Positions 4,504 to 56,230 are shown, numbered from the stretch's first letter. The stretch: 64,000 bases of DNA from Malacoraja senta (GCA_038087875.1 JAXLNO010005073.1:186001-250000), one strand, 5' to 3'. Translations and numbers: made by a program. The notes: generated by a model not told the origin, from the sequence alone.

Positions 4504-4533
4504 AACTGCACTCAGACACTCCCACAACTCCCC

Positions 4534-22330: not shown

Positions 22331-22427
22331 ATGCACAAAATGAGGTCGAGGTTTCTCTGCAGCAGTTTGCCACTTGGTTTGATGTTCGGTTTCTTTGTTT
22401 TCCTGCTTCGACCTGTTTCCACACAGA
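22331..22427 (+). CDS. Leader (signal peptide) exon MHKMRSRFLCSSLPLGLMFGFFVFLLRPVSTQ
   Basis: Acceptor TTATTTCCAAACAG at 22327, hydrophobic core, phase-1 donor A/GTAAGT. Confidence 0.85.
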
Positions 22428-22559
22428 GTAAGTGCTTTCTCTACGCCGGTCACAATCACCTTGCATTAATTATCATTGTCCGTGTAAACCCGCACCCATT
22501 GTCAATCTCGCTTTCCTCTCCACGTCCCTGAATGTGCTGCTGCCTCACAAATCCACGCC

Positions 22560-22990
22560 ATCCTTGCTGGACCTCCATTTCCGAGCCCATCCCATCAACC
22601 CCCTCTCCTTCTCCTGCACCGACACGGTCCTTATCAAAGTCATAAATGGCCTCCTGTGAGCTTGTTGCAGAGTTAAACTCTCCCTCCTCATCCCGCTCAG
22701 CCTCTGCAGCCTTTGACACGGTTGTCCACATCATCCTCCCCAACATCTCCTCACCACAGTCCAGGTGGGTGGAACTGCCCTCGACTTATCGATCCAGTCA
22801 CAGCCCGAGAACCACGCACAATGTCTTCACTTCACGCTCCCACAAAGTTCCTTCAAAACCAGGTGGAGTTCCTCCACTACCCCCAAGACAACCCCCTATC
22901 CCCACCTCCGTCTCCCTCCCTCCCACTCACTCACTTCTCTCATGTGATGAAATATCCCTGCATCAATCAGGCCAGGTTATTCCAGAAAGA
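22560..22990 (+). mobile_element. Degenerate L2-clade RT fragment in intron
   Basis: TDTVLIKVINGLL and SAAFDTVVH resemble L2 STETAL.KV.NDLL and LDLSAAFDTVDH. Confidence 0.6.
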
Positions 22991-23147
22991 CATCTCTTCA
23001 CAAACCGTGTCTTCCTCGCTGGAGTTTCCAAGGAAGATCACAACTGCCTGGAATTAAATTCAGTTCAAAATTAATGATTACAGATATGGGGTGGGTGGGG
23101 AAAATGTGGTTTAAATATTAATTCTTCATTGTTCGTATTCGCAACAG

Positions 23148-23489
23148 CAAACAGAAATCGAATGTATTTCTTGGATAACCGAGGCGACATTGTGTTAAAC
23201 GGACCGGACAATGCTGAGAAAGACACTGTTGTTGTCTGGGAATGGAAACCACACTCAGGGAAGGAAATCGGAAAATTGTCGACTTTTAGAAGAACGAGTG
23301 ACTATTGGATCAAAGTGAAGGCCGCTGGCGAGAGTAAAGTGGACTTGTACCCGGGGATGTATGTGAATCCCTATACCCTTGATCTGACAATTGATAAACC
23401 CACATTTAAATGGGCGGGAATTTTCACTTTGACTCAAACAGAACCGAGAAAGCAAATCCTGAAACAATATGAAATATTTGGGATGAAAG
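23148..23489 (+). CDS. Ig domain D1, cysteine-less V-like
   Basis: CAACAG acceptor, G/GTGAGT donor, 342 nt; IVLNG..WEW..LTIDKPTFKWAGIFTL; paralog of 28667-29011. Confidence 0.85.
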
Positions 23490-24164
23490 GTGAGTGGGTG
23501 CGATAAGGATCAATAATGTTTAATTTATCTCTGTAAATATTGTCACCTATAATGATGAGAGATGGCGGGAATTGTGAGACTTCTTCCACCCGGTGAAAAG
23601 TTAAACAACTGGGGAAGTGTTTTTGTTCATTGATTCTGTAATGATCAGCAGGGGTGATAATAGCTTGAAGACTTCACTGGGAACAGCAAATCAATGAATC
23701 GACCCGCAGCGAATACCATGGTCTTCTTGCCTGCACACGGTAAGGTGATCGCGGCAAGGTGGTATGAAACCAATGTCTCCCTGCAGTGGCCCCGGGGTGA
23801 CACTGCTACTTAATGTTACCCTGTGACCAGGTGGATGGAAGTCCATCGCCTGTGGAACATGGGCTCTGCCATAGAGTTCACCTCTTGAGAGCAATCAGAT
23901 ACACCTAGAAGGAGTGGAAATAGATGCATTTTCAACAGTTTGTGAATATTTGAAAGAGAACATGTGTAAATACAACAACGCCTGTATGTTGCCGGTTCCA
24001 CCTGCAGTCACACGGTGAACAGCCGGCATTTCACTGCGTCAATGTGACCAGCCACGGGTGTCAGGGGTCTGAGAGCACTGGGGGAGAAGTTGTTCTGACT
24101 TTCAGCTAGGCTGTCAGCTTTAAGCCCGGTTATTGGATGAACCATGAGATCCGCACTCTTCTGA

Positions 24165-26006
24165 AGTCCAGATTCCGGGCATTCAGGTCTGGAGATGCAG
24201 TGGTCTACAAGAAGTTCAGATACGACCTTGGTAAGGCCAACAAAAGTCCAAAAGGGACTTCTGCTCCAAGCTGGAGGATGAGACGGATGTTCGGCAACTG
24301 TGGTAGGGCTTGAATGCCATCACCTCCAACAAGGCAAAATCAGGAGGCAGCTCAAATGTCAGCGAAACATCACTCCCTGATGAGCTCAATGCGTTTTACG
24401 CACGTTTTGATAGGGAGAACACCGATGTGCCTTCCCGAGCCCCCATTCGCTGTGATGGTATTTCAGTCTCAGTCACAGAGGCCGACGTCAGGAAATCCTT
24501 CAGAGGGGTGAACCCTCGAAAAGCGCCTGGACCTGATGGTATACCTGGTCGTGTTCTAAAAACCTGTGTGGACCAACTGGCTGGAGTTTTTACGGACATT
24601 TTCAACCTCTCACTTCTGAGGTCTGAGGTTCCCACCTGCTTTAACAGGGCATCAATTATACCAGTGCCTAAGAAGAGCAAGGTGACGTGCCTCAATGACT
24701 ATCGACCTGTGCCACTAACGCCTGTGGAGATGAAGTGCTTTGAGAGGTTGATCATGACGCAGATAAACTCCTACCTCGACAAAAACCTGGACCCACTGCC
24801 GTTCGCTTACCGCCACAACAGATCAACGGTGGATGCGATCTCGCTGGCTCTCCACTCCGCTCTGGACCACTTGGACAACACAAACTCATATGTCAGGCTG
24901 TTATTCATCGATTACAGGTCGCCATTTAACACAATCATCCCCTCCAAGCTGGTTACCAAACTCTCAGATCTGGGTCTCTGCGCATCCCTCTGCAATTGGA
25001 TCCTCAACTTCCTCATTCACAGACCACAGTCTGTTCGTATTGGTGGAAATGTGTCAGACTCGATAACAATCAGCACGGGAGCACCTCAAGGCTGCGTGCT
25101 CAGCCCCCTGCTGTACTCACTCTATACTCATGACTGCGTAGCCGGACATAGTGCGAACTCCATCATCAAGTTCGCTGATGACACCGCTGTTGTGGGACGT
25201 ATCACTGATGAGGACGAGTCAGAGTATAGAAGTGAGATCGACCGATTGACCAAATGGTGCCAGCACAATAACCTGGCCCTCAACACCAGCAAAACCAAGG
25301 AATTTGGAAGGGGTAGGATGGGGGCCCACAGTCCCGTTTATATCAACGGGTCGATGGTGGAAAGGGTCAAGAGCTTCAAATTCCTGGGCGTGCATATTTC
25401 TGAAGATCTCTCCTGGTCCCAGAACACTGATGCAATTATAAAGTGAGCTCATCAGCGCATCTACTTCCTGAGAAGATTACGGAGAGTCGGTTTGTCAAGG
25501 AGGACTCTCTCGAACATTTACAGGTGCACAGTAGAGAGCATGCTGACTGGTTGCATCGTGGCTTGGTTCGGCAACTTGAGCGCCCAGGAGCGGAAAAAGC
25601 TACAAAAAGTAGTAAACACTGCCCAGTCCATCATCGGCTCTGACCTCCCTTCCATCGAGGGGATCTATCGCAGTCGCTGCCTCAAAAAGGCTGGCAGCAT
25701 CATCAAGGACCCACACCATCCTGGCCACACACTCATCTCCCCGCGACCTTCAGGTAGAAGGTACAGGACCCTGAAATCTGCAACATCCAGGTTCAGGAAC
25801 AGCTGCTTCCCCACAGCCATCTGGTTATTAAACACAACTTCAAACAAACTCTGAACTATAACAGCCTATTGCACTTTATCTGTTTATTTATGTGTGCATA
25901 TATGTATATATATTCTATGGTACATGGACACACTGATCTGTTCTGTATTTATGCCTACAATATTCTGTTGTGCTGCAACAAGCAAGAATGTCATTGTCCC
26001 ATCTGG
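24165..26006 (+). mobile_element. Rex1/Babar LINE, 5' truncated, RT ORF 24310-25446 plus C-terminal frame
   Basis: KAPGPDG, NDYRPVPLT, GAPQGCVLSPLLY, KFADDT motifs. Confidence 0.92.
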
Positions 26007-26063
26007 GACTTGACCTGTACAAACCACTACTCACTCTGAATCTCATTGATCTGTTTTTCACAG

Positions 26064-26333
26064 TTGAGGCAAGTCCACAGAGGCCTCTGCTGGGCAGTGA
26101 CGTCACACTCAGCTGCACCATCTCCAGACTCTCAGATACAGTCAGTCTTCACTGGAGACCCATGGACTCATCCCAGCAGAACAGGAGCGACACTGATCAG
26201 ATCCGCCTGGATAACACGGTCTATCTGATGGTTCAACACGTTACAGTGGGGGATGGGAAGCTGTATGTGTGTGATGTGCAGGAAAACGGAAACATTGTTC
26301 ACACAAGTAATGGAGATTTTACTGTAGTCAACG
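26064..26333 (+). CDS. Ig domain D2, C2-type
   Basis: TTTTTCACAG acceptor, G/GTGAGT donor; VTLSC..LHW..LYVC. Confidence 0.9.
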
Positions 26334-26970
26334 GTGAGTGTAAACACCTCCCATTGGATATCAAGTAGACACTTGTATCACGGTGCTTCTTGTAATATTA
26401 TGTGTGTGCCCTGTGAAGAATTGTGGCATTCAGCTGGGAGCAGGACCCGGGAACAGGGAAGAACAGGGAATCAATGGGTGTGAATGGGAGAGGGATGGTG
26501 GGAATAATGGGAATGAAGGGACGGGAAGACCCGACCTACTTGAAGTGCGAACCTGTCCGGGTCAGTCCCCACGCAGGCATCCTCTGGGCTGCTTCTGTCC
26601 GCAGCCTGAACCTGCACCACCTCTTGCAGACAAACTGACAGAGACATTCACCTCCCAGACCGCTCTCGGGAGTCTCCGGGAGGTTTCATTCCATCCCGGG
26701 AGATTCCCGGACAGTCCGGGTGTGGGGGCGAACCTAATGTTGAAATGTAGAGTGGAATATCCAAACTTCACTGCAATTTACTGCCGTACAGGACATTGTA
26801 TTTTATAAAGATCTGATGAGTTTAGTGCGGCATTCATGAAAGATGTTACATTTGAAACTTGATCAGCTGAACAAAACACCACGAATGTTTATAAGAATAC
26901 GGTTGAGAATCTCTGTATGGCACGGTAACTGTAATACTGAAAGGAGTTATCCTCTGTCTCTCTGATACAG

Positions 26971-27312
26971 ATTTATATAGGGAGATATACACACTTTACC
27001 GCTCCAGCACAGATCACAGTTAACTTCACCTGGTTTGTTCTGTGAGTTATGGTGATAGCTATTCCCGTGCTGAGTGGACCTGGACACCTCGTCGCCTTCA
27101 ACAACACAAAGAAATAGCATCTGCAGAACGTTCTCAGCCCATCAATGTCAAAGGGACCGACTTCAGGAATCGACTGGTGAGCTCAGGGAAACCCTTCGAT
27201 GGCGAGGATTTCAGTGTGAGGATTGTCCCCGTTGTGTTTCAAGATGCCGGAGTTTACGCATGTTTTCTGGAATCATATCCATTTCTCACCATTGATCTAA
27301 TCACAGTGAAAG
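26971..27312 (+). CDS. Ig domain D3, V-type, with premature TAA at 27021-27023
   Basis: TGATACAG acceptor, G/GTAGGA donor; LVC..EWTW..FSVRI..DAGVYAC; paralog has CAA (Gln) at the stop position. Confidence 0.85.
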
Positions 27313-27390
27313 GTAGGAGACAGAATGTTGCCACTGAGTTTACTGATGAACTTATTGTTTAAAATGTAAACAACCTGCTTGTTTCCACAG

Positions 27391-27651
27391 TCACAGCTGA
27401 ACCGTCTGATGCAGTGACTGAGGGAGACACCGTTACCCTGACCTGCACTGTGTCTCACGTCACTGGGTCAATGAGACTGGTTTGGATCAATGGCGATGGC
27501 AAAAGTGTTGGAGAAAAGACACTGACTGTGGAAGAGAAATCACAGAGTCTGGTTATTCAGAAAGCTGAGAGAGGCAGAAGGAACTGGAGATGTGGTTTGT
27601 TTCATCAAGACCTGCCCCGGCTTGTTGTCCCGTACTATCAGGAGCCCCGTG
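27391..27651 (+). CDS. Ig domain D4, C2-type with WxC
   Basis: TTTCCACAG acceptor after a 78-bp intron, G/GTAAGT donor; VTLTC..LVW..NWRC. Confidence 0.9.
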
Positions 27652-28666
27652 GTAAGTGATAAGGGTTTGTTCTTCATACTTAGAGTCATGATTGAGTTTT
27701 GATGTCGCTTATTGATCCTGAAATTTGAGTGGAATATTTTCTTCCAGTTTGAGTGGTCTAACTGTTATGATCAATGAATTCTCAAATTTCAAATAACACT
27801 TCCCGAACCCCACTTCTCCCCCCCCCCCCACCCTTCATTGTGCACGCATTTATCCCACCACCCAGTTATCCTATTCTCTTCCCTTCCTCTTTCAACTCAT
27901 CTCCCACCCCTTCCAATTGCAGAGTTTTCCTTTTATGTTCTTGCTCCACTTCCACCCATATCCCTCCCTCTGTTACTGATCTGACTGTAGATCAGTCAGT
28001 ATTAGTTGACCTGATCTATGTCATGTTTTACTGCATGCCGCTGTGTACTCGAACAGTCATCATATTATCTGGTCTGTTAGTCCAGCCTCTAGTTAGATTC
28101 GTTGCTGAGCTTGAGCTTACAACACCTAAGTATTTGAGCTCTGTGTGTTTACTATAACAAACAACTTCTTCTTATGTATGGATCCTGTTATTACACATGT
28201 TTATACTGACAACCTTTTGTCTCCATTTCACCCCTCCATTTTGTCATTATCTCAATCCATCTACTCATCACCATTCCCCACCTGTATCCACCTATCACTC
28301 ACCATGCTTTGTCTCATGCCTACTTCCCTTCCCCAGTTGTCACTCTCCCATTCCATCAGTCTGAGAATGCATCCTGACATGAAACGTCATCAATCCATTC
28401 CCTCCACAGATGCTGCCTGACCCATTGAGTTTCTCCAACACTTTGCGTTTGATCAACATTCCACAATCTGCAGTTTCTTGTGTCTCCATTGAGACCCACT
28501 GGTCAACGTGGACAGATTGCTGCAGAGGGCCTGTTTCCATGCTGTTCCATGATGATGAATTATAACGTACAACTTAGTAAAGATTAATTCTCTGCAATAT
28601 TGCTACTGACAAGGTCAGTGAAAAATTATTGTCCAACATTTACACATTTGTTCTCTTTTCCTACAG

Positions 28667-29011
28667 GAAGTGGACATTATATGTACTTTTTCCATCAGGA
28701 AGGCAACTTTGTATTGAAAGGACCAGACAGTCCTGGAAATGGCCCCATTGACTTGGAATGGAGGCCACACTCAGGGCAACAAACCACAAAGCGATTGGCC
28801 ACTTTCCACAGAGAAGATCAGCAGTGGGACGTACAATGGAGTGATGAGTACAATCAAATACCAGGCATTTCCCAGAGGATGCATGCGGACTGGGGTACCC
28901 TTAATCCGAGGATCAGGATGCCAACATTCAAACTTGCAGGACTGTTCACCTGGACTCAAACAGAGCCCGCTGGGAAAATCCTGAGACAGTGGGAACTATT
29001 TGGGATCAAAG
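28667..29011 (+). CDS. Ig domain D5, cysteine-less V-like
   Basis: TTTTCCTACAG acceptor, G/GTAATA donor; FVLKGPD..LEWRPHSG..PTFKLAGLFTWTQTEP. Confidence 0.85.
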
Positions 29012-29622
29012 GTAATAGAGTCATAGTGTCACACAGCACTGAAACAGGCCCTTTGGCCCAATTCATCCATACTGACCAACTACCCATCTAAACATCCCAT
29101 TTGCCCTCATTTGGCCCATATCCCTTCAACCTTTATTTCCATATACCTGTTTAAATGCCCTTTAAATGCTGTACCTGCATCAAACACTTCCTCTGCTCGA
29201 TCTTTCCATAAAGTATGTTTAGGTACCACACTCTTTGTCAAAACTGCCCCTAATATTAAGGGGTATATCAAATCTGCCCCTCTCACCTTAAACATGTACT
29301 ATCTAGTTGTTGATTCCCCAACCCTGGACAAAAGACCATGTGCGTTTACTATAGATATGCCTCTCATGATTTCATTCACTCCCATATAATCTCTGTTAAA
29401 GAATCCAAGAAATATAATGTCTGAAGAAGGGTCTCAACCTGAAACGTCACCTATCTATGTTCTCTAGAGTTCAAAGGTCTTTTATTGTCACGTGTAACAA
29501 TTAAGGGGCAGTGATATTCATATTACCAGACCTGCTGAATTACTCCTGCACTTTATGTCCTTTTATATATTAACCAGCATCTGCAGTTCTGTGTTTCTAC
29601 TATACTAAAAACATCCCTACCT

Positions 29623-30003
29623 GGAAGTGTTGATGTGGGAGACGAGGGGGCGAGGGGGACAGGTGGTCACTACCAGGAAGTGTTGATGTGGGAGACGAGG
29701 GGGCGAGGGGGACAGGTGGTCACTACCAGGAAGTGTTGATGTGGTAGACGAGGGGGTGAGGGGGACAGGTGGTCACTACCAGGAAGTGTTGATGTGGGAG
29801 ACGAGGGGGCGAGGGGGACAGGTGGTCACGACCAGGAAGTGTTGATGTGGGAGACGAGGGGGCGAGGGGGACAGGTGGTCACTACCTGGAAGTGTTGATG
29901 TGGGAGACGAGGGGGCGAGGGGGACAGATGGTCACTACCTGGAAGTGTTGATGTGGGAGACGAGGGGGCGAAGGGGGCAGATGGTCACTACCAGGAAGTG
30001 TTG
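29623..30003. repeat. 53-bp G-rich minisatellite, 7 copies
   Basis: GGAAGTGTTGATGTGGGAGACGAGGGGGCGAGGGGGACAGGTGGTCACTACCA repeats at 29623+53n. Confidence 0.95.
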
Positions 30004-30128
30004 AAGACATCACTGAGCACGGTAGCTCAACATTCAGCCGACTGTCAGTCTGCAGGAAAAAGACAATTCTGCCCACAGTAGTTCAGAAAGCTGTTGGTGA
30101 ACTGAACCACATGTGTCTGTTTCCGCAG

Positions 30129-30401
30129 TTGAGGCCGACTCACCGAGGCCAGTGATGGGCAGTGACATCACCCTCAGCTGTACCATCTCCAGACTCTCAG
30201 ATACCATCAGTCTTCACTGGAAACCAAGAGGCTCATCTCAGCAGAACAGGAGGAGCAACACTGATCAAATCCATCTGATTAACGCCGTCTATCTGATGAT
30301 CCAACATGTTGGAGCAGGAAATCCCAATCTGTACACATGGGAAGTGCAGGAAAATACCTCCATTATTCTCACTGGAGACACCAATGTCGAAGTGGATCAG
30401 G
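30129..30401 (+). CDS. Ig domain D6, C2-type, second Cys replaced by Trp
   Basis: TTTCCGCAG acceptor, G/GTGAGT donor; ITLSCTISRLSDTISLHW; LYTW versus LYVC in D2. Confidence 0.88.
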
Positions 30402-30721
30402 GTGAGTCCAAAGCTGCCTTGCAGCAGGTATTAAATAGATCTTGATATCAAACTGTTCCACATGTTGTATAGTGAGCACTGACTCCACCCGTGGGCTTCC
30501 ACACTGCAGGATGTGGACATTGCCTTTACCCTGGGACATGGTGTAAATATAAAATGGTGGTACTAAGATTGATGGAGCCACACAGGAGAACCAAGAGATT
30601 CATTTCAGTTCACCTGCATGAATCAAAGAGAATAATATCCAGTGATGGAAATAACATCTAGTTTTCAGTGTATAACAGAACAGGAAAATATGAACTAATT
30701 CAAGTATAAATGCAGAGGAAA

Positions 30722-31395
30722 TATCAGAATCAGAATCACATTTTATTGGCCACGTAATAATACACAGGGAATTTGACAGTGCTTTGCTCGCATAAGGTAA
30801 AAACACGATATACAACAGACAATTAAAAATAAAACATTATAATTTAAACATGTGAATATAAAGTACCGGAGTAAAAAGAGGCTACCGACTTTTGGCTGTT
30901 GAGTAGAGCTACGGCTCGTGGGAAGAAGTTGTTTTTATGTCTGGCTGTGGCTGCTTTGACAATCAGGACTCACCTGCCAGAGGGAAGTGATTCAAAGAGT
31001 TTGTGGCCTGGGTGAGAGGGGTCAGAGATGATCTTGCCCGCTCACTTCCTGGCCCTTGCAGTGTACAGTTCATCAATGGAGGGAATGTTGCAGCCAATAA
31101 CCTTCTCTGCTGATCGGACGATTCGCTGCAGCCTCCAGGTATCGTGCTTGGTGGCTGAGCCAAACCAGACCATGATGGAGAAGGTGAGGACAGACTCTAT
31201 GATGGTAGTGTAAAACTGGACCATCATTGCCTGTGGCAGGTTGTGTTTCCTCAGCTGCCGCAGGAAGTACATCCTCTGTTGGGACTTTTTGACTGTGGAG
31301 TCGATGGTGGCCTCCCAATTAAGGTTGCTGGAGATGATGATTCCGAAGAAATTAAATGACTCCACAGTTGTGACTGTGGTGTTGTTGAAGATGAG
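30722..31395 (-). mobile_element. Rex1/Babar LINE 3' fragment
   Basis: ORF 31042-31365 KKSQQRMYFLRQLRK..FYTTIIESVLT; (ATTCTG)n tail. Confidence 0.8.
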
Positions 31396-31469
31396 TGGGG
31401 GAGGGGAGGGGGAGCTCTACAATCAGGAGGGGATGATTGAGTCTACAATCAATTCCACTGTCTATAGAG

Positions 31470-31935
31470 CACTGAGCTTCAGGTTGTTACGATGTCAACA
31501 GGACACCAGCTTTATGATTAGGGTGACTTGGACATCTTGCTGAAGTAAGCATGCAGGTACAGCAGGCAATGGAGAAAGCGAATGGCATGTTGGCCTTCAT
31601 AGCGAGATGATTCGAGTATAGGAGCAAAGAGATCCTACTGCAGTTGTACGGGGCCCTGGTGAGACCACACCTGGAGTATTGTGTGCAGTTTTGGTCTCCT
31701 AGTTTGAGAAAGGACATTCTTGCTATCGAGTGAGTGCAGCATAGGTTCACCAGGTTAATTCCTGGAATGGCGGACTGACATATGATGAAAGAATGGATCG
31801 ATTGGGTATATATTCACTGAAATTTAGAAGGATGAGAAGGGATCTTATAGAAACGTATAAAATTATTAAGGGATTGGGCAGGCTAGATGCAGGAAAAATG
31901 TTCCCCATGTTGGGCGAGTCCAGAACCATGGGTCC
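31470..31935 (+). mobile_element. CR1 ORF2 3' fragment
   Basis: GTGAGACCACACCTGGAGTATTGTGTGCAGTTTTGGTCTCC encodes [13 protein letters not shown]. Confidence 0.8.
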
Positions 31936-32040
31936 CAGCTGACATCCCAGAGCCGGGGGTTTGTCCCTGTGGAAACTCACAACATTGTATCTCGGCGTGT
32001 GTGGAAATCTAATTCTTTGTTCCCTGTCCCTATCTTGCAG

Positions 32041-32379
32041 GTTTACATAACAAGACGTACACAGTTTATCGCTCAGTCACAGATCACAGTCAACTCGACC
32101 TGATTTGTGAAGCTTCTCCTGAGCTCATTGAAACCAAATGGACTTGGAGATCACCACGTTTCCAGAATCAAGAGAAGGAAATAGCTTCTTCTCACAGGTC
32201 TGGGCCGATACATGTCAACAGGAGCTACTTTGGGAATCGACTGGAAACCATAGAGGGAAATGTGAATGGCAAGAATTTCCATGTGAGGATTGTCCCCGTG
32301 CAGTTTGCAGATGCCGGAGTTTACACATGTTCCACGGGATCAAATATATATGTGACCATTGAACTAATCACAGTTACAG
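32041..32379 (+). CDS. Ig domain D7, V-type, intact (missed by the ORF track for lack of a start codon)
   Basis: TCTTGCAG acceptor, G/GTAGGA donor; GLHNKTYTVYRSVTDHSQLDLIC..KWTW..FHVRIVPVQFADAGVYTC..IELITVT. Confidence 0.9.
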
Positions 32380-33186
32380 GTAGGAGACTGGATGTTACTA
32401 CTTTCAAGAATTAAGTTACTGGTGTAGAGTTTCTAATCTGAGTGCAGACTGCAATGTCAGCAGAAATTCCCAAGTTTGAAGAATTATTTTACCTCCAGAG
32501 CTTCCTCTTCAACTTATTTGTATTTTGCTGAACCCAAAATCTGCTCTAAACCAACATTATTGGGAAGCACATCAAATGTTATTTTCATTTATTTTGCTGA
32601 AAACGCATTGTTTTATACATAAGAGAGGGAATATGATGAAATGTGATTCACAAAGGTGCAAATGAGCTTCTATCGAAAATATTTAAAAATCATTCAACTT
32701 CACTTAATACATTCCCCAAGTTTCTTTGACCCCAAACGACCCATCCTAATTTTTGAAGGCTCACTGGACGCTTAAAACTGAGTGTATTTTGTGGAATGTA
32801 TCGATTAATATTTACCTGGATGAGTGTTGTGGCCAAAACTGTGGCCAGAGACAATGATGTGGGCATTGGTTGCTCTTTGTATAATTAGTTCAAAACTGTT
32901 GTGAATGATTATGGAAAAGACACTTGGAGAGGTACATGGATGGGAAAGGTGCAGAGGGATATGGGCCAAATGTGGGAACATATTTTAGATGGAGCATCTT
33001 GGTCAGCATGGATGAGTTGGGCTGAATGGACAGAATTGTTTCATGCTGTATGACTATGCCTCTAACTCTTGTTGTGTAATATAATTTTCCACACTTAGAA
33101 CGCCAGATACTGGTGTCAAAGTACTGAGAAAAATGCAACACAATCCAGACAAAATTCATTGTTTTACGATTTTCTTCTTTCCACAG

Positions 33187-33456
33187 TCACAACTGAACCA
33201 TCTAGCGCAGTGACTGAGGGAAGAAACATTACCTTGACCTGCTCTGTGTCTCATGTCACTGAGTCAATAAGACTGGTTTGGATCAATGATGAAGGCAAAG
33301 TTGTAGAGCAGAAAAATCTCATTCAAACAAAGCAGGAGAATAATTCTTTGCAGCTGATTATTGCAATAGCTGATGGAGTAAGAAGGAAATGGACATGTGG
33401 TTTGTTTCATCAAAGAACAGCCAAGGTTGTCATTCCATATAATCTGCAGGTGAACA
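33187..33456 (+). CDS. Ig domain D8, C2-type with WxC
   Basis: TTTCCACAG acceptor, A/GTAAGT donor; ITLTC..LVW..KWTC. Confidence 0.9.
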
Positions 33457-33539
33457 GTAAGTTTCTTAGCTTCTGCTCTTCGTTATCTCGACACAGAGTT
33501 CTTGTCACGTTGCTATTCTTTTTGGATAACTTTTAACAT

Positions 33540-33900
33540 TCCATGTCTTACTGCAAGTAGAGCATAATCATAGACATTTCCTTCAAACCTCTTGTCCATG
33601 CCTATAAGGTCACTTCTATTGTAAGTCGTCCAGGTCTCTGAAGCACATGGGAGCACATGGATCACTACTGCTGGCAGACCACTGACCAAGACCTGTGTTG
33701 GCCATCTCATTGAAGGTGATCGGGAATTGCATCATCAATGTCTGTCCTTGTTGATAAGTGTCTCCACAGGTATGAAAACTGGTCCAGTAGTATGAACACC
33801 AGTGTGTCACTGTGAACCTTTTTGTCAGAGGTCAGTATAGTAAGGTGGGCAGCTTGGTGGAAGATCTTTGCCATAACACCCAAACTGTGCCACTTAAAGA
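33540..33900 (-). mobile_element. Degenerate RTE-clade LINE fragment
   Basis: FSYLWRHLSTRTDIDD and ASETWTTY match RTE RT C-terminal motifs. Confidence 0.6.
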
Positions 33901-34074
33901 TCACAAACATATTGAAAATCATCTTACAAATAGTTGTACACGTTTCTTTCCCCTGTTCTGATGCTGTAAAACATTACAGCGGTTGAAGCATCCACAGTAA
34001 CTTCACCAAAGGCTGCCATGTGAGAACAGAAGATGTGGGGGAGGGAATATTGATGTCTTCACCTTGTCTGACCA

Positions 34075-34376
34075 TGGCGGCTCAGTGGTAGGGTTGCTGC
34101 CTTACAGCGCCAGGGACCCGGGTTCAATCCTGACTACAGGTGCTGTCTGTATGGAGTTTGTACCTTCATCCCGTGCCCTGTGTGGGTTTTCTCCAGGATT
34201 TCCGGTTTTCTCCCAAATTCCAAAGATGTACAAGTCTGTAAGTTAATAGGCTTGGTTTAATTGTATGTTCTCCCTGGTGTGTGTAGGATAGTGTTAGTCT
34301 GTGGGAATCGCTGGTTGGTGTGGACTCGGCGAGCAGAAGGACTTGTTTCCCCGCTGTATCTCTAAACTAATCTAAA
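34075..34376 (+). mobile_element. V-SINE (HE1-like)
   Basis: tRNA head GGCGGCTCAGTGGTAGGG..GGGTTCAATCC, V-domain, CTAAA tail. Confidence 0.85.
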
Positions 34377-35569
34377 CACGCCCTTTCCTCCCAATCCCAC
34401 CCATCCATTAATCCCTGCCCTTCATGTGGCCCCAAGCCATCGGTGAAAGACATGTTGTACAATGCTGACATAAGGCAAAGCACTGACCCCTAACAGAGGA
34501 AGATCCTGTAAACACCCAGGCACAAAGAAACAATCTCCACCACACATAGATCAATCAAGAGTCAGTGAAGTACAAAGTGGAAAGTATCAATGTCCCAACA
34601 GGAACACTTTAATTCCTCACAGATAATGACATCATCCAATAATAGAATTGTGGAATGGTTGTAGCACAGAAGGTGGCCATTTGACCCATCATATCCATGC
34701 TAACTCTCATCCAGTGCAACTCGCTAATTCTACCCCCTCTCCTTTTGCCATTACATTGCAGCTTTTTCATCATTATATATTTGTCCAATTATCTCTGGAA
34801 AGCCACGGTAGAACCCAGCTCCCCAACTGATGCAGAAAGTACACTTTAGACTCCAACTACCTGCTGCCTAAAAAGATTGTCCTCAAGTCATTCTAGCATG
34901 TTTTCCCCTTTATTTTAAACCTATAACATTTTGTGCTCAGCCTTTCCACTGAAGGGAGCATCCTTCCACAATCCATTCTGTTCAGACTGAATAAATGATG
35001 CATAAATGAACAATGATGCCATTGATGTGATGAAAGAGCATTATTGACTCTTGTCTTCAAACTCTCTCTTCAGTGTGCCATGGTAATAACTGGACAGAGA
35101 ACAGCCATAAAAAGAATCTTAATTATACCAACCATGTTTACTGTTTAGTTTAGAGATACAGAGCGGAAACAGGCCCTTCGGCCCACCGGGACCACGCCAA
35201 CCAGCGATCCCCGCATATTAACACTATCCTACACCCACTAGGGACAATTTATACATTTACCAAACCAATTAAAGGGACGGAGATATCAATCAGTGAGTGA
35301 ATAGATTAGTTGGTGTGTGGAATTAATGCATGGATCAACCATCTCCAATTTTACACTAGAAACACAGGAAGATGTGTTCATTAGGATTGCAATAATAATG
35401 TGTTCAACCTCATTGACATCAGTAAGCAATGGTTACATGCACAGTACAGTTTTAGTACTTGAAGACCAAAATTAATTTTAGGAGTTGAAAATCGTAATGA
35501 AAAATCATAATAATAATCAGCAGGACAGATAGCAACTGTGAAAGAGGAACAACTGTGAAAGAGGAACAA

Positions 35570-36340
35570 AACCAAGGAACTGATTGTGGACTTTGGAAGG
35601 GGTAGGATGGGGACCCACAGTCCCGTTTATATCAATGGGTTGATGGTGGAAAGGGTCAAGAGCTTCAAATTCCTGGGCGTGCACATCTCTGAAGATCTCT
35701 CCTGGTCCGAGAACACTGATGCTATTATAAAGAAAGCACATCAGCGCCTCTACTTCGTGAGAAGATTACGGAGAGTCGGTTTGTCAAGGAGGACTCTCTC
35801 TAACTTCTACAGGTGCACAGTAGAGAGCATGCTGACCGGTTGCATCGTGGCTTGGTTCGGCAACTTGAGCGCCCAGGAGCGAAAAGGACTACAAAAAGAT
35901 GTGACCATTGCCCAGTCCATCACCGGCTCTGACCTCCCTACCATAGAGGGGATCTCTCGCAGTCGCTGCCTCAAAAAGGCTGGCAGCATCATCAAGGACC
36001 CACATCATCCTCGCCACACACTCATCTCCCCGCTACCTTCAGGTAGAAGGTACAGGAGCCTGAAGACTGCAACGACCAGGTTCAGGAATAGCTACTTCCC
36101 CACAGCCATCAGGCTATGAAACTCAACTCAAACAAAAATCTGAACATTAATAGCCCATTATCTGTTTATTTGCACTTTATCAGTTTATTTATTCATGTGT
36201 GTATATATTTATACAATGGTATATGGACACACTGATCTGTTCTGTATTCATGCCGTCTATATTCTGTTGTGCTGAAGCAAAGCAAGAATTTCATTGTCCT
36301 AACTGGGACACACGACAATAAACTCTCTTGAATCTTGAAT
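35570..36340 (+). mobile_element. Rex1/Babar LINE 3' fragment
   Basis: ORF 35586-36119, same family as 24165-26006; (CTTGAAT)n tail. Confidence 0.9.
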
Positions 36341-37148
36341 CTTGAGTCCAGCCATGATCGCATTAAATGTAGGTGCTGGCTCGAGGGGCTGAATGGCCTA
36401 CTCCTGCACCTATTGTCTATTGTCAAAGATCCTTTCTTTGAATCTGACAACGGTTTTTTCATCATAAAACATGAACTCACTTCTTTCCCTTTCCACGGAT
36501 ACTGCTCAAACGGCTGAGTATTTCTAACCTTTACAGTTCTTGTGCTCCTGGTTAGAGAGGATTGAAGCTGGAGGGCAATATCCACTCTGTTGTCAGCAGT
36601 GCTCATTCAACCATTGTTCCAGGCTTAGAATATGATAGACATTTGTCCACTGTACAGTGGGAAGTATCACAGCTGAATCAGCTACTTTATCAACCATCAG
36701 CTCCCATCTCATGCCTGAGAAATGGCAGCTGATTGTAACCAAGAAATAGAAACTTGTGTGAATGTTTACAGTCTCTAACTGATGGCTACTGAGGCAAGTT
36801 GTGGCTCTCTGATCTTTCTGAGTACGGTCAATTAATCTGGGGGGGAAAAGACGCAATGTGCTGGAGTAACTCAACGGGTCAGGCGGAATCTCTGGAGAAC
36901 ATGGATAGGTGAGGTTTTGGGTCTGGACCCTACTTAAGACTAAAGGGCTGAGTTTCTCCAACACTTTGTGTCTTTTATTGGTAAACTGTCATCTGCAGTA
37001 CCTTGTGTCTCAGTGAATCTGGATCACAAGTTAAACTCAAGACTTCTGATCTAAATTAGTCAGTGTGGTTAATGCCTGGTCTTTGGGGGAGCTTTTGAAC
37101 GATGTCCATTTATTCTACAAATGTGAACTGTGTTTATTATTTTGACAG

Positions 37149-37256
37149 GGAATCACCATTTTATAATCAGATTTGTTGTAATTATCGGGGGTCTGGCTGT
37201 TCTCATCATCATTATACTGGCAGTGGAGTTCTGTCAAAGAAAGCGCAAGCCTACAG
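37149..37256 (+). CDS. Transmembrane exon RNHHFIIRFVVIIGGLAVLIIIILAVEFCQRKRKPT
   Basis: TTTTGACAG acceptor, G/GTAAAG donor, hydrophobic stretch followed by Cys and basic stop-transfer. Confidence 0.88.
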
Positions 37257-38964
37257 GTAAAGTACATGAAGACATCCTTAATGCAGCACAGATTCCCCAC
37301 ATTATCAATCACAATGTTATCTCTGTTACAAGGAGAAAAGAACAATATGTTTTGGATAAGAAAAGTATCTGTTTGTGCTTATGTTGTTGAGAAATTGATT
37401 TCAGACTTTTTGTGTTCAATTAAAGCATTATTTATGCAATGTGGATTGTCCTGTCTACCTGCGTTGCCATGAGGAGTCTGCTGTATGATTTCAGGTGCTG
37501 TTCTGCAATGATCTGACCACGTGGTGATTGTGTCACCATCCCCTGTGTAAACCATTATCAAATAAACATGCCAGAAGTTGAAGTATAGCTAGTGTAGTCA
37601 TGTAGAAAATATGGTCCTCAATTTGCCCTCAACATGTTCCTATTTACTGAGGGATGAATATTGGCCAGGAAACCAGGAGACCAAGGCATCTCCACTGCAC
37701 TTTGGTGATTCACGTTCCAAAATCTATTGTGTCCCAAGAGGCCAGAAGGGGCCTCAGTTTAACAAATAATCTTTAATCTGGTGAGGCCAATGCTGCAACA
37801 ATCCCAAATGGCAACAGAGTGTTTGGCTCCACTGTGTGTTCAAATTTGGGGTTGTGCCTGAGGGTTTATTCTGTGTTGTTGAACAAACTGATCAGACGGG
37901 TATCGGTCTAGTACAACAGTTCATCAAGGTCACTGACACATGGAATACTCAATTCTTAAAGCTTCCCTTATATTTATATAAATCAACATTTTTTTCCCAT
38001 TAAAAAAATAAACCATTCCAATAACTGATCATTAGAAATATAAAATTACACATTGAATATATTAACTCTATGTATAATTATAAATTCAGTTGCTCCTTTA
38101 CTTGTCATCTTGACTTGTGAAAACTCTGCAGTGCAAAGATGCATTTGTCCACTCTCCAGATATTTTCAACTCTGCTAGGCACCTCCACATGTTGGCCTTA
38201 CCTCATTCATGGTCTCCTGTGCCTTCCCACCCATGTTCTGTCCAGCAATGGCTCTATCGTGGAATCCATACCGTAACTCAAATCCATGCTCATCCTGTAC
38301 CTCATATTCTCCATCACCATCTTCTTGGGCATCCTGTCCATGTAACACATGATCTATCCATGTAATTTGACTTCTGTCACTCATTCCCATCATTGCACCA
38401 CCATTTTATTCACAATATTTTTCCTGAACTGAATCCGAATTCTCAGATTATCAAATAGGATTTAAACCTGTGCTTCTGGACTATTAATCTCAAAGAGTCT
38501 TGGATTAATATCCAGTTAACCTATGACAATCCAAAAGTACATCAAAGTAAGCAAACTAAATAATGTACCCATTAACAGGAGTCAGCACAACACATTTGAA
38601 AGTAAGTTGGAGAGAAACACATCACCAATTCTAAATCTGGTAATGTTGGGTAAAATTAATTACATATTGTGTTTATCATATTTGTGGAAAACGGAGTTAA
38701 TGGAATCTCTATTGTGTTTTGTTCAATGTGTGAAATTAAATTGTATGTAAAATCATGAGGGGAATAGATAGGGTGAGTGTGCAGAGTCTTTGACCCAGTA
38801 TAAAGTAATCAAAAACTAGAAGACATAGGTTTAAGTTGAGAGGAACCTGAGTGGCAGCTTTTTCACTCAGATGATGGTGGTTATATGGAACAAGCTGACA
38901 GAGAAGGTCGTAGAGGAAGGAACTATAACTGCATTTAAAAGACACTTAGGTAGGTACATGAACC

Positions 38965-39860
38965 ACCGGGTGGCACCGCAATGGCTGCCTCGCCAACAGT
39001 CTGTCTCGTCCTTTTCCTTCTTTGATGTTTTTTAGTATGTGTTAGATGGATGTTTTAGTGTTCTTTAGCTTTATTTTATGTGGGGGGTGGAGGGAGGTTG
39101 GGGGAAACTTTTTTAGATCTCTTACCTCGACGAAGATGCATTTTTTTCCGTATGGTATCTCCATCCGCATCCGCACTGTGGCCTAACATCGAGGTGCTGG
39201 CGGCCTCTTGCTGGGGAATGACTTCGGGAGCTCCAACCGTGGGAGCCTGCAGGATATAATGATCGTGGAGCTGGTGGTCCCTGTCGGGGATCGACCTTGG
39301 AGCTCCAACCGTGGAGCCTGCAGGATATAACATTGTGGAGCTTGTGGTCCCTGTCGGGGATCGACCTTGGAGCTCCAACCGCGGGTGCCTGCAGGATATA
39401 ACATTGTGGAGCTTGTGGTCCCTCTCGGGGATCGACCTTGGAGCTCCAACCGTGGTCTGCAGATTTAACATCGTGGAGCTGGTGGTCCCTGTCGGGGATC
39501 GACCTTGGAGCTCCAACCGTGGAGCCTGCAGATTTAACATCGTGGAGCACGTGGTTAGGGATCGACTACGGGACCTCCAAGCCGCAGGAGCTTCGACTGC
39601 CCTGACCTGGGGGCTTCAATCGTCAGCTGTGGGAGCTTCTATCACCCCGACTGCGAATGGTTCGACTGCCCCGACCACGGGAGAATAAAGAGTGAAGAAG
39701 ATTAGACTTTATTACCTTCCATCACAGTGAGGAATGTGGAGAATCCACTGTGGTGGATGTTTATATTAACTTTTCTGTAGTTGTGTGTCTTGTTGCTTTT
39801 TCTAGTATGACTATGATAAATTGAGTTTAATTGCACCTTAATTGGTGCACATGAAAATAA
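38965..39860 (+). mobile_element. SINE-like retroposon with about 5 internal 67-71 bp tandem repeats (39228-39560)
   Basis: GGGGATCGACCTTGGAGCTCCAACCG repeats; 3' tail like 1480-1620. Confidence 0.55.
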
Positions 39861-39901
39861 AATACATTTGAAGCTTTGGAGAAGAAAGGTTAAGGTCATG
39901 G

Positions 39902-40128
39902 TGTAGCGGAAACTGCTGGCGCACATAGATATCGAACCCAGCGTTGGGAAGCTGCGGTCACGTGACTCGGGAGGGGCTGCTGTTTTCGTGCGGTTTCGTT
40001 TTGGCACCACAGTTGTTTTGCTGACCACCGTTGTGATCAGACGTGTATGCAGAGACCTTTTTGCTAAGGATCGAGTGTTCAATAAAAACCGTTCAGAAAA
40101 CGTAGTCGTGGTTTCTGCATCCGTTAAA
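39902..40128 (+). mobile_element. Solo LTR, 227 bp, with 4-bp TSD ATGG
   Basis: TGTAGCGG...CCGTTA(A)A termini, AATAAA at 40081, ATGG at 39898-901 and 40129-132. Confidence 0.7.
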
Positions 40129-40288
40129 ATGGGTGAATTGCAGGCACATGGGTCTAGCTTGGATGGGGCAACTTGGATGGTATAGACTAGTTGAGCCAAA
40201 GGACATGGTTCTGTGCTGTATGACTCTATGACTCTTTGACTTTATAAAAAGGTGATAACAATTTAAATTGTGCCCTCTCTCTAAACAG

Positions 40289-40387
40289 GTTTGGGCAATC
40301 AAAGACAGACAGCTCCACCATCAAAAAGAAACACAGAAAGTGAATCTCAACTTTAAGGCAACCTTGAAGAAATTCAGCAGATGGCAG
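40289..40387 (+). CDS. Candidate cytoplasmic-tail exon GLGNQRQTAPPSKRNTESESQL*GNLEEIQQMA
   Basis: Pyrimidine-rich CCCTCTCTCTAAACAG acceptor, phase 1 compatible; TAA at 40354-56; cut by LTR at 40389. Confidence 0.5.
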
Positions 40388-40877
40388 GTGTAGTGGCCAT
40401 TTGGCCTGTTTTACATGTCATTGATGATGGCATGTGCCTTTAAATTTTAGACTGCCCGTTGTATTGTGGGTGGGATTTATGACGTGTTTTTGGGCGTGTT
40501 TGGAACTTAGATGCTTGCGCAGAAGTCTAGTTTTTAGATTAGTTTGGAGAGACGATGGAGAAGGTCAATCCTTCGACCATGTCAATGTTACGGAGACACG
40601 AGGAGTTTTGTAATGTTTAAAGTTGCAAGTTGGGATTGAAGGAAGATTGCAGTAACGAGTCGGGAGAAACTTGGATGTATCTTGCTGTTTACCATCAACA
40701 ATAACGCATTTATTCAACAAAAGACTGCGTGTTGAAGCTTTATGAGTGAAGAAGCTCTGAAGGTGTCTGAGGAAGCTTGCATGCGTATCGAAGATATTCC
40801 CCTTATCCATTCTCATCCAAATAGCTGCTTGAGAATTTGTTTCTCAAAAGATAAGAAAAATCTGCCGTTACAATAAC

Positions 40878-41102
40878 TCGAAGGGAACCCCCGACAGGGG
40901 GATTAAATACTAGTCCCAGAGAGTGGGACAGAAGATTAAATCAAAGGGAACCTCCGGCAGGGGGGTTAAGTACTAGTCCCAGAGAGTGGGACAGAAGATT
41001 AAATCGAAGGGAACCTCCGGCAGGGGGGTTAAATACTAGTCCCAGAGAGTGGGACAGAAGATTAAATCAAAGGGAACCTCCGGCTGGGGGGTTAAATACT
41101 AG
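40878..41102. repeat. 63-bp tandem repeat, 3.5 copies, directly after the 5' LTR
   Basis: TAGTCCCAGAGAGTGGGAC at 40911, 40974, 41037. Confidence 0.9.
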
Positions 41103-43353
41103 AAAGGGACATTGAGGGTGGTCTTTGACTGTGCTGCAGTCTTTAAAGGTACATCGCTTAACAGTGAACTACTGCAAGGTCCAGACCTTATCAACCCACT
41201 CATTGGAGTTCTCATCAAATTTAAGCAAGAACCGATTGCTTTAATGGCTGACATCAGATCGATGTTTCATCAAGTGAAAGTAGCTGGTGAACACATTAAT
41301 TACCTGCGATTCTTATTGTGGCCTGAAGGGGATGTGCAGCAAGATCTTGTTGATTACCGATTGAAAGTACATCTCTTTGGAGCCGTGTCATCTCCAAGTT
41401 GTGCGAACTTCGCTTTAAGGAAGACCGCAGAGGATAATAAAGAGTATTTGCCAGAGGAGGTAATTTCCACTTTGAAAAATAATTTCTACGTGGACGATTG
41501 CCTAAAATCCATATCTACTGAGCAGAAAGCAATTCAAATGGTAAAACACCAGACCTCTCTCTGCAATAAGGGAGGATTTGTACTTTCCAAGTGGATCAGC
41601 AACAATCGTGTTGTATTGGAAAGCATTCCACCAGATGACAGAGCTGAAGAAACCAAGGAGTTGGATTTAGTTAAAGACAATTTGCCAATGGAAAGGGCAC
41701 TGGGACTGCACTGGTGCATGGAGACGGATGTGTTTAAGTTTAAATTGTCGATTCAGGAGCGACCATGTACAAGAAGGGGTATCTTTTCTGTGATTGGCTC
41801 AGTATACGACCCTTTGAGAATTCTTGCACCATTTACACTGCCAGCCAAGTTAATTTTACAAAACCTTTGTAAGGAAAAACTTGGATGGGATGAGAGTATA
41901 ACTCAAACATCCTCGCACCGTTGGCCAGAATGGTTAACGGACTCCATCAAATTTCAAAGTTTAAGGTGGATCGGTGCATAAAGCCTAAAAACTTTGGTAA
42001 GATCAGAAGTGCACAATTGCATCATTTTTCGGATGTCAGTGAAAGTGGTTACAGGACTGTTTCATATTAAAGACTGCAAAATGTTAGCAAAAGAGTGCAT
42101 GTTGCATTCTTAATGAGAAAAGCCAGAGTGGCACCACTGAAACAAATGACGATTCCCAGAATGGAACTTACAGCAGCAGTCTTAGCTGTTAAAATTGACA
42201 TAATGCTGCAAAAGGAACTACAATTTCAACTGGAAGAATCTATCTTCTGGACCGATAGCACTACGGTTCTGAAATACATCAATAATGAAAACAAACGCTT
42301 TATGACATTTGTAGCAAATAGAGTCTCCTTTGTATTGGGAGCTACTAATGTTTCTCAATGGAGATATGTTAGCACCAAAGAAAATCCTGCGGATGAAGCC
42401 TCTAGAGGACTAACAGCAAATTGTTTTCTAAACAACAGGAGATGGATCAATGTGCCCAAGTTTCTTTGTGAACAAAGCAGAGAATGGCCAAAGCTTGAAC
42501 TCGGATATGAAATCTCTGTAAATGATCCGGAAATTAAACAAAACATTTCGGTGATTGTGATTGCTAAAGACTCATATGACACCGTGAACAATTTAATTAC
42601 CCACTTTTCATCATGGAATAAATTGATAACTTCTTAAGATAAATTGATAATTGTTCTTAAAATAAAAACAAGATTATTGCTGGCGGCTCGAGAAAGGAGA
42701 CAAATTACAGAGTATCCTGGGAGAGAATCCTGATAAACGGAAAGGAGAGATTGAAGGCCAGATGCAAGTTTTTGAAGCTTCATATGACGTACAGGATTTA
42801 CGTCTTGATGATGTCCTCAAGGCGGAAAATGCGATCATCTCTTTCTGTCAAAGACAGAAATACAAAGAAGAAATATTAACATTGGAAGCTGGAGGACAGG
42901 GGGTAAAAAGAAACAGTCAATTGTACAAGCTCGACCCAGTCTGGGAGGAAGGTCTTCTGCGGATGGGTGGTCGCCTAAACAAATTGGCAATGCCCGTAAA
43001 AACTAAACATCCTATCATTCTCTCAAAGGACTTTTACATAACGACATTATTTTTACGACATATTCATGAACAAGTTAGACATGGAGGAAGAAATTATATG
43101 TTGTCCCAACTTGGTAACAAATATTGGGTTATCAAGGCTGATTCTGCAGCATCACGAGGTTCTTGGTTGATGGGAAGAATACTAGAAATCATGCCTCACG
43201 TTCGGGGTTTGGTGCGTATGGTACGTCTTAAAACAAAAAACTATGTTTTAATAAGATCAATAACCAAGTTGTGTTTGCTTCTAGAAGGCGAAGGTGATGA
43301 TGGAAGAGTCGATGAAGGGCCATGATTGCGGATATATAGTGCATGCTATTTTT

Positions 43354-43428
43354 TCCTCGTTAGTATCGTGTTTAGTATCCCTGCCTGTCACGCGTTAGAC
43401 CGGGGTTCAATTTGCCGACGAGGAGCCA
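43354..43428 (+). tRNA. tRNA-Asp(GTC) pseudogene with 3' CCA inside the BEL 3' untranslated region
   Basis: TCCTCGTTAGTAT...CCTGTCACGCG..ACCGGGGTTCAATTTGCCGACGAGGAG-CCA; 72+3 nt; perfect acceptor stem, damaged anticodon and T stems. Confidence 0.85.
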
Positions 43429-43795
43429 CAGGGTTTAATTCCCTGACCTTTTGCTTTTGATATATGTATAGCCTTTATGGCCATTTTTTAAATGTTTATT
43501 AGTAATTGCCTCGTTAGATACTCGGAACAATTAGGAGCCGGTATGTAGTGGCCATTTGGCCTGTTTTGCATGTCACTGATGATGGCATGTGCCTTTAAAT
43601 TTTAGACTGCCCGTTGTATTGTGGGTGGGATTTATGACGTGTTTTTAGGCGTGTTTGGAGCTTAGATGCTTGCGCAGGTCTAGTTTTTAGATTAGTTTGG
43701 AGAGACGATGGAGAAGGTCAATCCTTCAACCATGTCAATGTTACGGAGACACGAGGAGTTGTGTAATGTTTAAAGTTGCAAGTTGGAATTGAAGG

Positions 43796-56135: not shown

Positions 56136-56230
56136 ATAAGGGGGGTGGGGTGTCGAATGGGATAGTGGAGGATGGAGTTAAAGGGAAAGGGTTTCTTAAA
56201 TGTGTGAGCGTAGAGACAAAGGAGTGTAAA

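Follow-up and report, generated by a model that had tools for sequence, protein, structure and literature searches.

The 64,000-nucleotide (nt) stretch of Malacoraja senta DNA analyzed here (GCA_038087875.1 JAXLNO010005073.1:186001-250000) is referred to as the window, and all coordinates given below are window positions. It contains one gene, transposons and satellites only. The gene consists of eleven exons on the + strand between positions 22331 and 40387 and encodes a receptor of the immunoglobulin (Ig) superfamily with eight Ig domains (D1 to D8). It is probably one pseudogenised copy, of the inhibitory type, belonging to a tandemly expanded Ig-superfamily family of cartilaginous and ray-finned fishes, and not an orthologue of CD4 or LAG-3.

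The splice sites are canonical (AG/GT) and all junctions are in phase 1. An earlier note made from the sequence had described a leader, two successive V-C2-V-C2 blocks, a transmembrane (TM) segment and a tail, and all of these parts were recovered on the + strand. Exon 1 (22331-22427) carries the start codon and the signal peptide and ends in phase 1 with the donor GTAAGT; it was located by its sequence and by a tblastn match. The N-terminus of the window gene is near-identical to that of its nearest relative, Leucoraja erinacea LOC129701495, which shares about 80% amino acid (aa) identity in both halves.

The first block begins with D1 (23148-23489), a V-type domain delimited by its splice sites and without the cysteine pair of strands B and F. 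D2 (26064-26333, splice sites and Pfam Ig) is a C-type domain with YVC in strand F instead of the WxC motif. It is followed by D3 (26971-27312), a V-set domain according to Pfam that contains an in-frame stop codon, and by D4 (27391-27651, splice sites and Pfam Ig), a C2 domain with the motif NWRC. In the second block, D5 (28667-29011) is a V-type domain without the cysteine pair and a copy of D1 (43% aa identity), and D6 (30129-30401, splice sites and Pfam Ig) is a C-type domain whose strand-F cysteine is replaced (YTW), as it is in the proteins of Mobula, Leucoraja and the nurse shark. D7 (32041-32379) is an intact copy of D3 (50% aa identity) and matches the Pfam V-set, and D8 (33187-33456, splice sites and Pfam Ig) is a C2 domain with KWTC. 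The Pfam scan classified D3 and D7 as V-set and D2, D4, D6 and D8 as generic Ig domains and gave no match for D1 and D5. In the predicted structure, the D5-type domain is a V-type Ig domain, which matches the V domain of NITR-11 over 103 residues (Z 13.7, root-mean-square deviation (rmsd) 2.0 Å). The TM exon (37149-37256) encodes a hydrophobic core without charged residues, together with a basic stop-transfer sequence, and resembles the TM segment of Rhinoraja and Leucoraja members whose tails carry inhibitory-type motifs. The last exon found is tail exon 1 (40289-40387), which encodes a conserved YxN motif in relatives and aligns to the tails of the family proteins P0017 and P0091.

The eight-Ig-domain gene was confirmed far beyond chance. 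Annotated ray proteins match the window exon by exon in tblastn searches (E values down to 1e-58), and contigs of related skates, taken from two runs and 90-95% identical to the window, cover exons only. A spliced contig of run X1 joins D2 to D3 exactly at the predicted junction (26332|26971) and confirms the start of the D3 exon. An X1 contig also joins D4 to D5 (27650|28666), skipping 1015 nt with GT..AG ends, and a contig of run X2 joins D5 to D6 at the predicted junction (29009|30127). In the related-skate contigs over the TM and tail exons, the TM-to-tail splice joint was not seen. The possibility of two separate genes, one for each four-exon block, was rejected because neither a leader nor a TM exon separates D4 from D5, because the spliced contig connects these two domains, and because orthologous proteins have eight domains.

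Two in-frame stop codons interrupt the coding sequence, so that the proviso "if read through" attached to the eight-domain protein in the earlier note was justified. The first TAA lies in D3 (27021-27023), where relatives, including the closest Leucoraja protein, have Glu (GAA). In the contig comparison, the runs X1, X11 and a part of X2 have G at position 27021, and T is retained in X13. The second TAA (40354-40356) replaces the Tyr codon of the conserved L-Y-x-N motif in tail exon 1, where relatives read LYSN or LYGN; X2 contigs and one X13 contig have T for A at 40356, giving TAT (Tyr). Immediately behind this exon, the donor G at 40388 directly abuts the 5′ long terminal repeat (LTR) of a BEL/Pao retrotransposon (40389-43795, + strand, defined by LTRs and internal open reading frames), which starts at donor base +2 and is followed by a long interspersed nuclear element (LINE). 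Many contigs of related skates start at 40389.

The tail exon in the window ends after 33 codons, and the tails of relatives continue in further coded segments with motifs resembling the immunoreceptor tyrosine-based inhibitory motif (ITIM). The window copy has an ITIM-type TM exon and the first tail exon without the ITIM exons. On the + strand of the remaining 23 kb, no ITIM-coding exon was found by sensitive tblastn searches with the tails of relatives and by motif scans, and a regular-expression motif scan of the + strand did not find an exon coding for an ITAM (immunoreceptor tyrosine-based activation motif) within the rest of the window. Because of the two TAA codons, the LTR at the last donor and the missing downstream ITIM exon, the window copy is considered a probable pseudogene, which at best would yield a truncated protein unable to signal.

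Some observations count against decay of this copy. Apart from the two stop codons, the exons are intact and keep open frames, cysteines and splice sites. All Ig exons are in phase 1-1, and therefore skipping of one exon keeps the frame; RefSeq isoforms annotated in relatives do skip D3 (P0017) or D2 (P0028), and an mRNA without D3 would avoid the first stop. For these reasons a product lacking D3 and truncated in its tail is possible. Furthermore, the T at 27021 is backed by run X13 only, which possibly represents the source sample, and the ITIM exons could lie past the end of the window. A gene that is still functional, with D3 skipped, with stops that are allelic or assembly errors, or with a truncated tail that makes it a non-signalling decoy receptor, is nevertheless rather unlikely. 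It would have to accommodate two nonsense changes, independent of each other, at positions where relatives have sense codons, a last donor occupied by an LTR element with a LINE behind it, and 23 kb without a downstream tail exon. The RNA-like contigs do not help it either, being only 90-95% identical and therefore derived from relatives or paralogues and not from the window locus.

To delimit the family, a profile of D1 and D5 was compared with 1.84 billion representative proteins. It found 36 proteins and nothing outside the family, with matches in Mobula, Scyliorhinus, Narcine, Heterodontus, Amblyraja, Callorhinchus, Acipenser and Anguilla, among others. Word-based homologue searches added many more members, all without an established family name. 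Taken together, the members come from sharks, rays, skates, a chimaera, sturgeons, paddlefish, bichir, eels, tarpon, salmonids, Umbra and mormyrids. The family is thus not restricted to chondrichthyans, contrary to the earlier note, where a chondrichthyan family had been thought probable; sturgeon, bichir, eels, tarpon, salmonids and mormyrids have members as well. Its members are annotated as "uncharacterized protein" or "Ig-like domain-containing protein" or carry automatic guesses such as obscurin-like, VCAM1-like, CEACAM-like (e.g., CEACAM5-like) or CD276 homolog. Consecutive LOC numbers of the Leucoraja and Rhinoraja members indicate tandem clusters.

The basic form of the family has four domains and about 450-560 aa. 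The eight-domain architecture was found in annotated proteins of Mobula, Rhinoraja, Leucoraja, Heterodontus, Cetorhinus, Carcharodon, Rhincodon and others, and in the product of a nurse shark complementary DNA (cDNA), the "obscurin-like protein" AGQ17915 with 916 aa and eight domains, which is the only family cDNA found. The suggestion in the earlier note that the family is undescribed holds in part: no paper characterising it was found in the literature that could be searched, but its members are annotated in many RefSeq genomes and the cDNA exists. The family is therefore a fish-wide multigene family that is already annotated but apparently uncharacterised. For sharks, "several CD4/LAG3-like molecules" have been mentioned (Redmond et al., PMC6238376), and AGQ17915 may be among them, a suggestion based only on its being a nurse shark cDNA.

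The two halves of the window gene correspond domain by domain, with aa identities of 43, 61, 50 and 55% between D1-D4 and D5-D8. The age of this doubling was addressed with a maximum-likelihood tree of 38 four-domain units. In this tree, the C-terminal halves of the shark and ray eight-domain proteins form one clade (support 100/99), within which the batoids form a clade of their own (support 100/100), and the N-terminal halves are grouped together with the four-domain proteins of the family. Because of these two groupings, the duplication of the four-exon block within the gene is placed by the tree as a single event before the shark-ray split. The eight-domain form would accordingly have arisen in the shark-ray ancestor and, if each V-C2 pair is a rigid rod as predicted below, would consist of four rods. 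D1, the membrane-distal domain, is the most divergent one (35% identity to the Mobula protein vs. 65-75% for D5-D7).

The eel members repeat the block D1-D2-D3 many times, and a single predicted protein can contain as many as seven D1-like domains; examples are P0007 (Anguilla rostrata, 2139 aa) and P0026. This repetition is a second, independent lengthening of the same ectodomain.

The cytoplasmic tails were compared in 140 family proteins with a predicted TM segment; the TM predictor is crude and includes false positives, so that the following counts are approximate. At least one motif of the ITIM consensus (I/V/L/S)xYxx(I/V/L) is present in 59 of the 140 tails and at least two in 35, and YxN (YSN, YGN or YDN) occurs in 52 of them. 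An ITAM-like pattern fits loosely in two tails only; the usual tyrosine motifs of the family are ITIM-like and about 45 residues apart. Two types of members can be distinguished. In the first, an uncharged TM segment precedes a tail with YxN, followed by (I/L)HY(E/A/S)(S/T)(I/V/F)xF and, close to the C-terminus, by V(I/V)Y(A/S/G)x(I/L); the two tyrosine motifs behind YxN fit or nearly fit the ITIM consensus. In the second, represented by 17 shark and ray proteins, the TM segment has a central Lys (YLL(V/I)KL type) and the short tail is without tyrosine motifs; a form with a TM Lys also exists in sturgeon.

ITIMs recruit SHP phosphatases, YxN binds Grb2, and a Lys in the TM segment pairs with an ITAM adaptor. 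Intact members of the family would therefore be type I membrane proteins of two kinds. Those with ITIM tails, carrying YxN as a Grb2-type Src homology 2 (SH2) site and two ITIM-like motifs, would recruit SHP-type phosphatases and damp signals, and an ITAM adaptor would be the partner of those with the TM Lys and a short tail. As judged from these motifs, the coexistence of both kinds is the pattern of a family of paired inhibitory and activating immunoreceptors. The combination of TM Lys and a short tail ending in ...ALQTL(K/N)SDP... is strongly conserved in sharks and rays (P0171 of Leucoraja, P0170 of Amblyraja, P0009, P0085 and others) and marks the putative activating-type branch. In P0037 of the manta Mobula birostris, a tail segment of about 30 residues bearing YxN is present twice in tandem, which suggests a duplication of a tail exon.

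The family shares several features with known paired-receptor families (KIR/LILR, CHIR, teleost LITR/NITR, Siglec/CEACAM), namely ITIM-tailed members beside short-tailed members with a charged TM segment, many tandem copies per genome, pseudogenised copies such as the probable one in the window, and a membrane-distal domain, here D1, that diverges fastest. Unlike in those families, the ectodomain is predicted to consist of CD4-type V-C2 rods and not of strings of C2 or I-set domains or of single V domains. Since it is common to cartilaginous and ray-finned fishes, the family is also much older than most families of paired receptors.

The relation to CD4 and LAG-3 was analyzed with profiles of the two-domain modules. 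An hhalign comparison showed homology between the modules D1-D2 and D3-D4 that extends over both domains (probability 98%, E 6e-14), which fits the model of a V-C2 duplication at the origin of CD4 and LAG-3 (PMC10768021). Against all PDB sequences, the D3-D4 profile matched LAG-3 with an E value of 1.7e-12 and CD4 with 1.9e-10, both placed directly after pIgR and CEA, with titin at a similar rank. For pIgR, and largely for CEA, the score adds up several weak and repeated domain matches. The LAG-3 match covers stretches of more than 100 residues across the V-to-C2 junction, from the end of the V domain through the whole C2 domain, and aligns the WxC of the family to the WGC of LAG-3. LAG-3 and CD4 are thus the best contiguous, junction-spanning matches of this profile in the PDB.

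Structure prediction, which had been named in the earlier note as a check, gave a V-C2 pair with CD4-type rod geometry. The AlphaFold2 model of the module of type D5-D6, which is equivalent to D1-D2 (pLDDT 83, pTM 0.78), was compared with 48,161 PDB chains and found its best match in rat CD4 D3-D4 (Z 14.4, rmsd 3.1 Å, 171 of 177 residues). Human CD4 D1-D2 ranked third (Z 12.9, rmsd 3.7 Å), and LAG-3 D3-D4 superimposed with an rmsd of 4.8 Å. Other two-domain structures mostly reached 8-13 Å only, CAR (4.3 Å) and CD200RLa (5.4 Å) being closer. In both AlphaFold2 models, a continuous strand runs over the V-to-C2 boundary (strands 104-117 and 105-117), as in the rigid V+C2 rod of CD4 and LAG-3, where strand G of the V domain passes into strand A of the C2 domain. 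The basic V-C2-V-C2 ectodomain is probably composed of two CD4-like rigid rods, and the family probably belongs to one superfamily with CD4, LAG-3 and G6F.

An adhesion or immune receptor of some other Ig-superfamily lineage (CEACAM-, Siglec-, VCAM- or nectin-like), in which the resemblance to CD4 is convergent, appears highly unlikely. It would agree with CEA and CEACAM1 as the top matches of the whole-protein profile search against the PDB, with RefSeq names such as "CEACAM5-like" or "VCAM1-like", and with D8, which on its own matches the C2 domains of PECAM, VCAM, ICAM and Siglec equally well as CD4 D4. A phmmer search of the PDB with D8 alone had yielded only generic Ig matches, e.g., titin, IgE and PD-1. 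The scores of CEA and pIgR are, however, largely the sums over repeated domain matches described above, the rmsd of 8-13 Å found for most other two-domain structures exceeds the 3.1-3.7 Å for CD4, and the search with the D1-type domain gave no protein beyond the family among the 1.84 billion representatives.

Features shared with CD4 and LAG-3 include the V-C2-V-C2 order derived from a V-C2 duplication, a unit that is present twice in the window gene, the WxC motif in the membrane-proximal C2 domain, and the absence of an intron in the first V exon. The unsplit first V exon had been listed in the earlier note as a difference, which it is not, because shark CD4 and LAG-3 lack this intron as well (PMC10768021). 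The likeness that had been seen in WxC is partial: NWRC in D4 and KWTC in D8 agree with it, but D2 and D6 are without WxC, a distribution that holds across the family, whereas CD4 and LAG-3 have the motif in both C2 domains. The family further differs from CD4 and LAG-3 in lacking the Ig disulfide of D1 and D5, in the doubling of the ectodomain to eight domains, and in being a tandem multigene family instead of one gene per genome. Its tails are without Cx(C/H), the Lck clasp of CD4, which was found in none of the 140 family tails and not in the tail of the window gene. LAG-3 has a single-exon tail with a conserved (F/Y)xxL(D/E), unlike the multi-exon family tail with its conserved YxN. Without Cx(C/H), a conserved (F/Y)xxL(D/E) on a single tail exon and WxC in both C2 domains, the family is neither CD4 nor LAG-3, and the proposal of the earlier note that the gene represents a separate CD4/LAG-3-related lineage and not an orthologue was borne out.

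It is accordingly very improbable that the family is an additional, expanded paralogue within the CD4/LAG-3 lineage proper that serves as a co-receptor for class II molecules of the major histocompatibility complex (MHC). The domain order, WxC in D4 and D8, the contiguous LAG-3 and CD4 matches of the D3-D4 profile and the CD4-like rod geometry speak for it, and the window tail, if read through, gives YGNLE, which fits (F/Y)xxL(D/E). This fit is peculiar to the window copy, as relatives have YSNAM, YSNVN and YGNPD, and the reading of the tail motif as LAG-3-type was rejected because neither its L nor its E position is conserved among relatives. Beside the lack of Cx(C/H) and of WxC in D2 and D6, the multi-exon tail contrasts with the single-exon tail of LAG-3, and a single CD4 and a single LAG-3 have already been described in sharks (both PMC10768021). 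Moreover, the top structural match of the N-terminal module among the Swiss-Prot models is G6F.

In the comparison with 550,129 Swiss-Prot models, human, rat and bovine G6F ranked 1, 3 and 5 for the D5-D6-type model, with E values from 1.4e-10 (human) to 4.8e-9 and template-modelling scores (TM-scores) of 0.58-0.65. Rat G6F reached 0.65 and CD4 D3-D4 of many mammals 0.65-0.68, followed by LAG-3. The match covers the whole ectodomain of G6F, which is also a type I membrane protein. Work by Ohashi and colleagues from 2010 is said to have pointed to a resemblance of G6F-like to CD4/LAG-3. G6F-like has four Ig-like domains, one TM segment and a tail in which YxN, a motif shared by G6F, precedes tyrosine motifs split over later exons (PMC3528668). 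The family could therefore be the counterpart, in cartilaginous and basal fishes, of teleost G6F-like and tetrapod G6F and thus consist of receptors of the thrombocyte lineage; this is a serious possibility, although it is less likely than not. The ITAM of teleost G6F-like, two YxxL/I motifs 6-12 residues apart over two exons, differs from the ITIM-like motifs of the family, which are about 45 residues apart and form no ITAM, and G6F-like acts on thrombocytes as an activating receptor for collagen. The G6F of tetrapods has just two Ig domains. Teleost members of the family, e.g., those of salmonids, are annotated as "uncharacterized" or "CEACAM1-like" and not as G6F-like, and the likeness comes from the predicted structure.

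Placement of the family beside CD4, LAG-3 and G6F, within one superfamily, is supported by the profile and structural matches taken together. Several results speak against it or limit its reach. Neither CD4 nor LAG-3 was among the top 60 PDB matches of the D1-D2 profile, and the absence of WxC from D2 and D6 noted above belongs here as well. The structural arguments depend on predictions from an alignment of 14 sequences, made with AlphaFold, which has seen CD4, and the link to G6F is one of predicted structure only. For the D7-D8 model, Foldseek searches of PDB and Swiss-Prot retrieved mainly antibodies and assorted Ig-superfamily proteins at E values near 1e-4, and CD4, although first by TM-score, did not stand apart from the other matches. 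VIA-align matched only the D8 half of this model, with many C2 domains tied at Z 9-11. Finally, signalling and ligand are read from motifs alone.

The usual picture of CD4 and LAG-3 is that of a family of two genes to which G6F is distantly related. CD4-type rods combined with inhibitory and activating tails would add to them an old multigene set of relatives that is still without a name and whose tails do not resemble those of co-receptors. Through this set, comparative immunologists can ask which roles CD4-type rods had before, or have beside, the recognition of MHC class II. Such a set also helps to explain the "several CD4/LAG3-like molecules" of sharks (PMC6238376). A more far-reaching proposal, which is tentative and more doubtful than the placement itself, is that the ITIM-tailed and Lys-bearing members are ancient gnathostome paired receptors built of CD4-type rods, a sister group of G6F, CD4 and LAG-3 that survives in cartilaginous and many ray-finned fishes. 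If so, the family may represent an innate-style pool of receptors of the sort that gave rise to the MHC class II co-receptors, and the eight-domain form of elasmobranchs would be a four-rod receptor without known counterpart. The interest lies in the family more than in the locus, and the window copy is most likely a decaying member of a cluster.

The introns of the gene carry LINE fragments and a 53-bp tandem repeat. A LINE reverse-transcriptase fragment (24310-25446, + strand; RVT_1, E 9.6e-30) is located in the D1-D2 intron, outside the gene product, and the 53-bp repeat is located in the D5-D6 intron (29617-30004) with 7.3 copies and a match of 96%. The LTRs of the BEL/Pao element behind the tail exon (40389-40642 and 43544-43795) are 97% identical, which argues for a fairly recent insertion. 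Its internal open reading frames (ORFs) match RVT_1 (reverse transcriptase), Peptidase_A17 (Pao peptidase) and DUF5641. A scan of the whole window with ARAGORN detected no tRNA.

Large C-rich satellite arrays are present at 5395-10055, and further ones at 3620-4509 and 62239-63830; they account for the extreme GC skew of these regions. One array has a 34-bp unit with 137 copies and a match of 93%, and a 26-bp unit makes up two others, with 34 and 61 copies, which are located towards the two window ends. Furthermore, a near-complete LINE was found at 55209-58822. Its ORF1 contains a GDSL-lipase/OSK-like esterase domain and its ORF2 (915 aa) endonuclease and reverse-transcriptase domains, the two ORFs overlapping at about 56075-56135.

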